Notes: generated by a model not told the origin, from the sequence alone. A stretch of DNA of 64,000 nucleotides from Chrysemys picta bellii (GCF_011386835.1 NC_088802.1:54126001-54190000), one strand, 5' to 3'; positions 12,626 through 14,596 are shown, counted from the first letter of the stretch. Numbers and translations: made by a program.

Positions 12626-12733
12626 CTCCCCTCGTAGAAAGACGTCTGATGGAGGTAAAGCTCAGGGAGCTGCCTGCCTGGCTGGCAGCTTGTGATTTCT
12701 CTCCAAAGGGACTGCTCGGAGCGGTGCAGAAAG
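12626..12733 (+). CDS. C17orf80: C17orf80 coding exon: (A)PLVERRLMEVKLRELPAWLAACDFSPKGLLGAVQK
   Basis: TTTTGTAG acceptor, AAG|GTGAGC donor, 108 nt, phase 1-1; similar to the ATP synthase subunit f N-terminal half. Confidence 0.9.
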
Positions 12734-12909
12734 GTGAGCCGGGATCACTTGCTTCTTCTCTGTTAACTTGTCTGGAGCGTAGGAGTAGTATGTTGATGTG
12801 AGAGACAATAGGAGTTATTTGGCATGAGTTATCTTCATGTAAAAGGAAGTGGCTTGGTAGACTACTGTAATTTTAAAAGCCAAATGGTTGGATCAGTCAG
12901 CCATGATAT

Positions 12910-13106
12910 GGGAGGGATAGCTCAGTGGTTTGAGCATTGGCCTGCTAAACCCAGGGTTGTGAGTTCAATCCTTGAGGGGGCCACTTGGGGATCTGGAGCA
13001 AAATCAGTACTTGATCCTGCTAGTGAAGGCAGGGGATGGACTCAACTCAACTCAATGACCTTTCAAGGTCCCTTCCAGTTCTAGGAGATAGGATATCTCC
13101 ATTAAT
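12910..13106 (+). mobile_element. tRNA-derived SINE with CR1-like 3' tail (tortoise polIII/SINE type)
   Basis: A box TAGCTCAGTGG (12918-12928), B box GAGTTCAATCC (12961-12971), tRNA-like head, CR1-type tail GACC..CAAGGTCCCTTCCAGTTCTAG. Confidence 0.85.
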
Positions 13107-13167
13107 TTATTTATAGCCCTAATTTGAGATGAATAACCAAGCTGGCCCCACGTTTCTATTTCAACAG

Positions 13168-13284
13168 CCTGGAGCAGTTACTACAACAAATACATCGACG
13201 TAAAGAAGGGTGGAGCTGCTGGGATCTCCATGCTGTTGGCTGGATATTGCATCCTCAGCTATGGCTGGAGATATGAGCATCTGA
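13168..13284 (+). CDS. C17orf80: C17orf80 coding exon: (A)WSSYYNKYIDVKKGGAAGISMLLAGYCILSYGWRYEHL
   Basis: TCAACAG acceptor, CTGA|GTAAGG donor, 117 nt, phase 1-1; YYNKYIDVKKG plus a hydrophobic helix typical of subunit f. Confidence 0.92.
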
Positions 13285-14567
13285 GTAAGGTTTTCTTCTT
13301 GGCCTTTGTCTCTTCCAAGCAAATCCTTCTTTCGTTTTAGAGCCCAAAAAATCTCGTCATTAGTCAAGTGATTTCAGGGTTATAAACACGACTATTGGAG
13401 CTCCCTGTCAGGGAGCTGATGAGAGTTATCCATTATTTATGGATTGTAAAGCCTTCTGGAGGAAAGCAAAAGCTGCCATGGTGGTGAACATTAGCCCAGG
13501 CTGGTTGGTGGCTTCATGCCCTGTGATTAATACCCTGCCCAGCAGGAACCAGGCATGCTACAGAGGCAGTGGTCTCATTCCCCAGCTGGTGGAAGGGAAT
13601 ACCCTACGTTATTCAGCTCGGAGACAGCTGGTCTATGAAGGGAGTGATGAGCTCTGAAGAAAGTGATAACTATTCCTACCCTGTCCAGAAGGCTGGTAAC
13701 TGTGGTGCTGGCTTAGAGGGATTGAGAACATACTGCATTCCCTTCCCCCTTGGGACATAAATCCTGCATCTCTCCTGTTTCATGTAGTTTCTAGGGCAGG
13801 GCTTTCCTCACACTGCTGAATTTAAGCAACTTCCTATCATGCAACTGTTTTTGAGAGAGCTGCTGTAGACTCTGAGTTAAAGGTTAACATTTGTAAAACG
13901 CTTTGAAGATGAAAAGCATTACGTTATTTAAAAACGTAATTTCCAGCCGCCGTCCCCTTTCAGTCATACAGCTCGTGTCAAAAAGGCCAGTGCCATGCTG
14001 CATACGTCACCATCTCAGCACCTTCCAGTACTGCATTGAGCAACGCGACTACATGGCCGTCCCATGTTTGTTCTCTCAGTCTCTTCCCAGGGGAGAAGCA
14101 CGTGCAGTGAAGTGTCGTGTTTTGGTAGGATGCGGGGGGCTTTAATATACACGTGGCTGTGTATTTATGTTGGGGAAAGCAGAAAGAAGTGTGCCTTGCT
14201 CTTGGGCTGGGCACATGCACAGATACATGGAAACATCTAACCAGTTGAGCTTGACGAGTAGCAATACTCTTATTGCTACTAGCTGGGTGTAATTAGGATT
14301 TAAACCTCTTCATTCCTGCCACTGTGTTCTCTTCCCTTCCTCCTTGAACTGCTATGCCAGACAGCTGATGCATGATAGAGTCAACCTGCAGGAGACAATT
14401 ATGGTAAACCAAAAAGATCAGTTAAACCCCACTCCAATAAAGCAGTTTAGACATTTATGGTCCTTTGAATATCTAGGAGGTCTTTAAACACTACCAGAGA
14501 AACATTACTATTTTTCACCAGGGGTAACATATTGTAGCGTTAACTTTGTATTTCTCGCTCTGTAAAG

Positions 14568-14596
14568 AACAAGATCGCTGGCGCAAGTATCACTGA
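14568..14596 (+). CDS. C17orf80: C17orf80 terminal coding exon: (K)QDRWRKYH*
   Basis: Pyrimidine tract plus TAAAG acceptor; phase-1 join gives HLKQDRWRKYH* (cf. ATP5MF HLKHERLRKYH*); total CDS 1836 nt = 611 aa. Confidence 0.88.

Follow-up and report, generated by a model that had tools for sequence, protein, structure and literature searches.

Between positions 12,626 and 14,596 of a 64,000-nucleotide stretch of the Chrysemys picta bellii genome (hereafter, the window), three small exons together encode 84 residues that closely resemble subunit f of mitochondrial ATP synthase, the product of ATP5MF. A sequence-only reading had assigned these exons to the 3' end of another gene, C17orf80 (MTNAP1). 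The locus therefore raises the question of how an almost complete ATP synthase subunit came to stand at the end of a different protein, and of what it may be doing there. C17orf80/MTNAP1 has recently come to attention both as a disease gene and as a nucleoid factor, and the experiments reported so far were all conducted in human cells, where the f-like end is strongly degenerate.

The kinship of the MTNAP1 C-terminus with ATP5MF is already published, and a WRW domain is annotated in related turtles. The additions made here are an exact, exon-for-exon equivalence to ATP5MF, the case for a duplicated ATP5MF-CPSF4 gene pair, and the difference between sauropsids, which have kept the module well, and placentals, in which it has decayed. 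As argued below, turtle MTNAP1 is very probably a DNA-level duplicate of ATP5MF that acquired a new first exon and that would be anchored at the inner membrane by its f module.

Identity of the Gene and Layout of the Locus

A protein search with the large exon that precedes the three small ones returned Malaclemys terrapin MTNAP1 at 98% identity, other turtles at 68-94%, and squamates and mammals at about 30% (the lowest identity being 28%). The best matches were all named either 'C17orf80 homolog' or 'mitochondrial nucleoid-associated protein 1' (MTNAP1). Orthology to MTNAP1, with 98% identity to the Malaclemys protein, thus upholds the name C17orf80 given to the gene on first reading.

In a blastn comparison, the window and the Malaclemys locus align colinearly, with nucleotide identities of 96-98%. 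The order FAM104A (minus strand), MTNAP1 (plus), CPSF4L (minus) was observed both in the window and in four other turtles, where a CCCH zinc-finger gene lies on the minus strand 3' of MTNAP1 and FAM104A, also on the minus strand, lies 5' of it. The gene order at human 17q25.1 is likewise FAM104A-MTNAP1-CPSF4L. In the window, FAM104A starts near 7311-7282, and the non-coding first exon of MTNAP1 lies in a CpG-rich region common to this divergent gene; the exon was recognized from the loose end of an RNA contig (run X1) 5' of 10564, which matches window positions 7766-7795 exactly, and from a GTAGGT donor that follows at 7797. CPSF4L was located with bird and frog CPSF4 exon peptides, which gave six colinear tblastn blocks at 58-91% identity.

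The turtle gene displays a CCHC finger, an f-like end in the same polypeptide, orthology and synteny, which are among the features of the MTNAP1/C17orf80 group (defined in PMC10445727).

Exon Structure and Splicing

The coding sequence is made of four pieces that add up to 1836 nt, i.e., 611 codons plus the stop (Table 1). The coding part of the large exon (10573-12154, 1582 nt) is followed by a GTAAAA donor and leaves the frame in phase 1; if left unspliced, the reading frame from the ATG at 10573 would comprise 582 codons. Exons A, B and C are all preceded by AG acceptors, and A and B are followed by GT donors. The 3'UTR continues past 14750, with contigs extending beyond 14700.

Table 1. 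Features of the MTNAP1 locus in the window
Feature	Position	Strand	Basis
Non-coding first exon of MTNAP1, 3' part (start not defined)	7746..7796	+	contig end and donor
Large exon: 8 nt of 5'UTR, then ATG at 10573, 527 codons and 1 nt	10565..12154	+	ORF, RNA contigs
CCHC zinc finger, Cys11-x2-Cys14-x9-His24-x3-Cys28	10603..10656	+	read from translation
Exon A, 108 nt, phase 1; matrix-side half of the f module; counterpart of ATP5MF coding exon 2	12626..12733	+	
tRNA-like SINE inserted in intron 2; outside the gene product	12903..13114	+	
Exon B, 117 nt, phase 1; YYNKYI.VKKGG motif and single hydrophobic helix; counterpart of ATP5MF coding exon 3	13168..13284	+	
Predicted transmembrane helix, about 18 hydrophobic residues (boundary inferred)	13215..13268	+	
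Exon C, coding part, 29 nt, phase 1; ..QDRWRKYH, then TGA stop; counterpart of ATP5MF coding exon 4	14568..14596	+	
CPSF4L, a paralogue of CPSF4 (CCCH fingers, CCHC knuckle) lying tail-to-tail with MTNAP1	16710..23223	-	tblastn

Besides a zinc finger, the large exon encodes an extended disordered region of low conservation and the motif GLEWFPELYPNY. The spacing of the finger is the same as in the C17orf80 zinc finger described in PMC10445727, so that the CxxC..HxxxC domain previously proposed for the N-terminus is indeed present, in the form C-x2-C-x9-H-x3-C. The Pfam family PF28519 (MTNAP1_ZnF) is carried by the orthologues; the large exon itself gave no match in Pfam.

To the region 10450-14750 we mapped contigs from four public runs (X1, X4, X6 and X9), each from a different study. 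These runs had been labelled as RNA by guess, and the splicing of their contigs identifies them as such; contig depth cannot rank transcripts. In all four runs, single contigs join 12154 to 12626, 12733 to 13168 and 13284 to 14568, each time across a GT..AG intron, and continue back through the large exon. Identical junction peptides occur in ten annotated turtle proteins, and the series of exon sizes large/108/117/29 recurs in four turtle genomes. The splicing pattern modelled from the sequence is exactly that of the contigs, and the coordinates, the sizes of 108, 117 and 29 nt, the phase and the in-frame translations proposed with it were all correct. The three small exons are the genuine, expressed 3' end of turtle MTNAP1.

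Within intron 1, no contig from these runs covered positions 12322-12609, nor was there any sign of a separate small-exon start, bearing in mind that contigs attest presence rather than absence and that a rare short transcript would be compatible with the data. An in-frame ATG at 12514, which reads through the acceptor of exon A, was considered as an internal start and dropped, given the lack of RNA contigs at 12322-12609. The SINE in intron 2 is missing from the otherwise colinear Malaclemys locus, where the blastn alignment breaks; it was characterized by a huge summed contig depth with many loose ends, and an Rfam search with it gave no match.

Homology to ATP Synthase Subunit f

Judged by its sequence, the end of turtle MTNAP1 reproduces subunit f of ATP synthase almost intact. 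Against the solved mammalian subunits, exon A alone was matched with E values from 1.8e-8 to 9e-8 (its residues 1-35 corresponding to residues 11-45 of the human chain), and exon B alone with an E value of 5e-9 (residues 3-38 corresponding to human 49-84, with 21/38 residues identical to human). The two PDB matches are colinear and free of gaps, and the ..RKYH terminus is shared. Compared with ATP5MF of rabbit, rat and dog, the Malaclemys module shows 54-59% identity, in agreement with an earlier manual count of ~45/84 (about 54%) against the human protein.

When eight turtle modules were compared with a profile built from 15 canonical vertebrate ATP5MF, they scored 118-131 bits over 84 columns, without a gap. 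In Pfam, where the window exons were scanned singly, exon A reached 21.9 bits for the WRW family (PF10206), below the gathering score of 26.5 bits, and exon B gave no WRW match and a weak match to a fungal subunit F family (E 0.083). The passing score comes from the Malaclemys orthologue (P0001, 98% identical), which was recognized as WRW at 40.5 bits over residues 530-603. The Pfam check proposed at the outset was therefore positive in this 98%-identical protein, and the per-exon PDB matches, the WRW match and the 84 gapless profile columns agree with the essentially complete, ungapped domain that had been described from the sequence. Relatives of the module were gathered with a profile of 16 modules, since a word search with an intron-extended exon B yielded just 3 proteins.

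The hydrophobic stretch of 18 residues (AAGISMLLAGYCILSYGW) aligns with the helix of solved subunit f and is followed by a basic tail, ..KQDRWRKYH. An AF2 model of the module alone, of low confidence (pLDDT 56), predicted a helix at residues 54-83 that takes in this stretch.

The homology has a published history. Potter et al. (2023) reported that the C17orf80 C-terminus is homologous to ATP5MF (HHpred E 2.6e-15), defined the orthologues by the presence of a zinc finger and an f domain, and found them in gnathostomes (PMC10445727). The sequence-only reading was right in holding that some homology was known, but it understated how much, because both the near-full-length homology and the definition of orthologues are contained in that paper.

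Probable Origin by Duplication of an ATP5MF-CPSF4 Gene Pair

Canonical ATP5MF of Pluvialis (plover) and Xenopus laevis, whose exons we mapped exactly onto genomic DNA of one bird (L001) and one frog (L002), has coding exons of 16, 108, 117 and 29 nt, all in phase 1. The introns of the turtle module thus occupy positions identical, in place and phase, to those of ATP5MF in Pluvialis and Xenopus, as had been suspected from the sequence, and the similarity to subunit f begins precisely with the codon that the first junction divides. MTNAP1 lacks the 16-nt exon that encodes the initial Met; in its place stands the 1582-nt exon, which ends in the same phase.

In both bird and frog, ATP5MF (plus) is arranged tail-to-tail with CPSF4 (minus), and in the bird PTCD1 comes next. 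The equal exon structure and the tail-to-tail CPSF4 or CPSF4L neighbours imply that the gene pair was duplicated as DNA, to the exclusion of a retrocopy; the earlier proposal of a DNA-level duplication, which rested on shared intron positions and phases, holds on the same grounds. Structure and synteny suggest that an ancestral tail-to-tail ATP5MF-CPSF4 pair would have given rise to MTNAP1-CPSF4L and that, in the duplicate, the large exon would have taken the place of ATP5MF's initial 16-nt coding exon while preserving phase 1. The duplication most likely dates to the early vertebrate genome duplications, because C17orf80 is found in all jawed vertebrates according to the literature.

A literature search for ATP5MF-CPSF4 or C17orf80-CPSF4L paralogy returned nothing relevant, and Potter et al. 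(2023) do not mention introns, synteny, CPSF4 or reptiles (PMC10445727).

Preservation of the Module and Selection

Against the canonical ATP5MF profile, the MTNAP1 modules of turtles, squamates and birds scored 125, 126 and 125 bits, with mean identities to canonical ATP5MF of 56%, 57% and 54.5%, respectively. The corresponding values were 67.5 bits and 40% for the koala and 38 bits and 33.5% for ten placentals. Since canonical subunits f are 60-75% identical among themselves, the sauropsid module (of turtles, squamates and birds) is almost as near to canonical f as the canonical subunits are to one another, whereas in placentals the module is decayed. Pfam tells the same story, as WRW was not matched in the two placental MTNAP1 tested, and koala MTNAP1 reached 20.4 bits. 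The impression that the turtle copy is better preserved than the mammalian one can accordingly be put in numbers: for WRW, 40.5 bits versus no match and, relative to canonical ATP5MF, 125 versus 38 bits and 56% versus 33.5% identity, the second figure of each pair being for placentals.

A maximum-likelihood tree, built without fish or shark MTNAP1 and without an invertebrate outgroup, has a starred branch (98/86) between the MTNAP1-type modules and canonical ATP5MF. Bird MTNAP1-type modules stand apart from bird ATP5MF, and the placental path is about four times as long as the sauropsid one.

Among five turtles, the dN/dS of the module, computed exon by exon with split codons excluded, was 0.12-0.27 in all but the two closest pairs, which have too few differences to be informative. 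Exon A (the matrix half) gave 0.12-0.29 and exons B and C (the helix and tail half) 0.10-0.30; the zinc finger gave about 0.2, and the disordered stretch in the middle of the large exon about 0.55. In turtles, then, the module is under purifying selection, with both halves constrained, and is the most constrained part of MTNAP1.

Possible Role of the Module and Alternative Explanations

In the bovine and human structures, the N-terminus of subunit f is on the matrix side, which makes an N-terminal extension topologically possible. The module of MTNAP1 would keep this layout, its N-terminal side facing the matrix, a single helix crossing the membrane near the C-terminus and a short basic tail following it, and would hold the protein at the inner membrane, a role that rests on experiments with the human protein. 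By analogy with human C17orf80, the zinc finger and the disordered region may then reach out to the mtDNA nucleoids.

The experiments in question established that human C17orf80 resides mostly in the matrix, is attached by its C-terminus to the inner membrane and associates with mtDNA nucleoids (PMC10445727). Upon carbonate extraction at pH 11, 60-70% of the protein remained in the pellet, meaning that extraction was partial (PMC10445727). In a 2026 preprint, a C-terminal APEX2 tag was read as lying in the matrix, which conflicts with a membrane-spanning helix unless the tag blocks insertion.

It could be objected that the three exons are an ordinary stand-alone turtle ATP5MF, misjoined to the gene upstream. 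The sizes and phases are, after all, those of ATP5MF, many bird annotations call the module 'ATPK synthase, partial', and the 120 matches listed contain no turtle, squamate or crocodilian canonical ATP5MF; yet in four studies individual RNA contigs span the large exon and the three small ones, intron 1 is devoid of contigs at 12322-12609, the gene lacks the 16-nt Met exon, FAM104A and CPSF4L stand beside it instead of CPSF4 and PTCD1, and the module falls in the MTNAP1 clade of the tree, all of which leaves a misjoined ATP5MF with a practically negligible probability. Gene conversion, or the slow evolution of turtles, might in principle account for the likeness of the sauropsid module to ATP5MF with no need for selection on the module. 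This appears very improbable, even if turtles do evolve slowly and the identical exon sizes of the paralogues would permit conversion, because squamates and birds, although they evolve faster, conserve the module to the same degree (126 and 125 bits) and because, in the same turtle genes, dN/dS is about 0.55 for the disordered region against 0.12-0.27 for the module (bar the two closest pairs). Furthermore, the 98/86 branch splits bird modules from bird ATP5MF, a separation that argues against gene conversion.

A further idea, which goes back to the sequence-only reading, is that the sauropsid module still occupies the subunit-f site of complex V, or docks beside it, so that in a fraction of complexes a zinc-finger and disordered arm would tie nucleoids to cristae. 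The module is nearly canonical (125 bits, and 56% identity compared to the 60-75% found among canonical subunits), purifying selection acts on the matrix half and the helix/tail half alike, and a 2025 preprint raised the same docking idea for the human protein and reported changes in cristae and cardiolipin on knock-down. However, no interaction with complex V was detected in human cells, and OXPHOS assembly was normal in knock-outs (Potter et al. 2023, PMC10445727); the 2025 preprint itself reported that the BN-PAGE pattern of human ATP synthase was unchanged after knock-down and that the protein is of very low abundance. The matrix reading of the C-terminal APEX2 tag weighs in the same direction. 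In addition, the modules form a clade of their own, with fixed differences from canonical f, and birds retain a separate canonical ATP5MF. On balance, we regard docking at or near the subunit-f site as unlikely. We consider it distinctly unlikely that the end of sauropsid MTNAP1 serves as a working f variant in a subset of ATP synthases, coupling nucleoids to cristae; if this were true, placentals would have lost such coupling as the module decayed, which would explain the negative outcome of the human experiments.

The reading that we favour remains that of a membrane-anchored MTNAP1 derived from ATP5MF by duplication. Because exon A, the matrix half, is constrained as well as the helix, the sequence suggests that the sauropsid module may still bind some partner that recognizes a subunit-f-like surface. 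The f-like end of MTNAP1 can be regarded as the remnant of a whole ATP5MF gene, of which the placental version is the odd one out. To probe a contact with ATP synthase, cells of chicken or turtle would be the better system, as would a human protein fitted with the sauropsid module.

Comparison with Known Systems

Turtle MTNAP1 and human MTNAP1/C17orf80 (Potter et al. 2023, PMC10445727; Wu et al. 2023, PMC10484793) are alike in orthology and in the synteny FAM104A-MTNAP1-CPSF4L, as well as in architecture, with an N-terminal C-x2-C-x9-H-x3-C finger, a long disordered middle and an f-like C-terminus bearing one hydrophobic helix. In placental MTNAP1, unlike the turtle protein, the YYNKYINV, EVKL..LP.W and DFSP motifs are gone, as is the KYH end, and 3 residues are deleted.

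The annotation of bird genomes deserves attention in this respect, as dozens of bird annotations name the MTNAP1 module ATP5MF itself. The 84-residue 'ATPK synthase, partial' models of B10K birds, labelled as subunit f, are 67-77% identical to the turtle module and belong to the same clade; in one of them, from Lamprotornis (P0143), the GLEWFP..LYP motif known from the large exon of MTNAP1 is present as well. Genuine ATP5MF in birds is another protein, of 89 residues, whose gene adjoins CPSF4 and PTCD1. Birds accordingly have both genes, whereas no canonical ATP5MF from turtles, squamates or crocodilians was among the 120 matches listed for the module profile.

With canonical subunit f, for which structures have been solved (8h9f, 6zbb, 6j54 and 6tt7), the turtle module can be aligned without gaps from residue 6 onwards, through to the C-terminus, with about 56% of residues identical, and the genes have in common coding exons 2-4 and a CPSF4-type tail-to-tail neighbour. 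The module nonetheless belongs to a separate clade and shows fixed substitutions both before the YYNKY motif (AW for GH/GY) and in the helix (GYC for GYV). Canonical ATP5MF has CPSF4 and PTCD1 as its neighbours, turtle MTNAP1 has FAM104A and CPSF4L. Lastly, canonical ATP5MF is a stand-alone protein of about 88-94 residues, whose first coding exon accounts for 5 residues, whereas turtle MTNAP1, translated from one spliced mRNA of 611 codons, has 527 residues in the place of those five.

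Isoforms and Transcripts of MTNAP1

In-frame skipping of exon A (window 12626-12733, 108 nt), the first of the three exons encoding the subunit-f module of MTNAP1 (C17orf80), recurs among the annotated isoforms of turtles, squamates and primates (database proteins P0004, P0005, P0016, P0020-P0022, P0040-P0049 and others). Loss of this exon leaves an f module that is devoid of its matrix half and retains the helix. No joint corresponding to the skipping event was seen in the contigs of the four RNA runs.

In three of these four runs, the contigs lack 9 nt of the large exon, with the reading frame remaining intact, and the same three runs share about ten base differences across that exon. 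The gap and the shared differences are those of a different allele or of some closely related taxon.

Translation from an ATG within intron 1 continues in frame across the acceptor of exon A, giving an ORF of 95 codons. Because this ATG is not covered by RNA contigs in any of the four runs, it is probably due to chance.

Repeats and Probable Promoter Region

The tRNA-like SINE in intron 2 gave no match in an Rfam search. Its absence from the colinear locus of the related turtle Malaclemys indicates a recent insertion. In the RNA runs, the summed contig depth over this element was enormous, with many loose ends. The two minisatellites contain long proline-rich "ORFs", which we rejected as repeat artefacts.

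A CpG-rich region houses both the start of FAM104A and the non-coding exon of MTNAP1, which are separated by about 450 nt; this is probably a bidirectional promoter.

Features of the FAM104A-MTNAP1 region (window positions)
Feature	Position	Strand	Location or size
GC-rich minisatellite array	6679-7227		68-nt period; FAM104A gene body, just downstream of first coding exon
FAM104A start to end of MTNAP1 non-coding exon, within CpG-rich region	7282-7796		
FAM104A start	~7311	minus	
MTNAP1 non-coding exon, end	7796	plus	
Minisatellite	8065-8705		12 copies, 53-nt unit; intron between MTNAP1 non-coding exon and large exon
Gap in RNA contigs	11059		MTNAP1 large exon
ORF from intron 1 ATG	12514-12801		
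tRNA-like SINE	12903-13114		~210 nt; intron 2 of MTNAP1

Relationship to Canonical ATP5MF

In dozens of bird genome annotations, the MTNAP1-type module carries the label "ATPK synthase, partial" (84 residues; P0122-P0151 and similar models). This label treats the module as if it were ATP5MF, but the true bird ATP5MF is different: it comprises 89 residues, adjoins CPSF4 and PTCD1, and is found in some assemblies only. Among the 120 matches listed in the search with a profile of the module, canonical ATP5MF was represented for fishes, amphibians, birds and mammals, but not for a turtle, squamate or crocodilian, which may reflect an assembly or annotation gap.

A 91-residue protein from the coelacanth Latimeria (P0153) possesses MTNAP1-like residues, with GYC in the helix; in the tree, however, it sits next to canonical ATP5MF, a position that is moderately supported (95/79).
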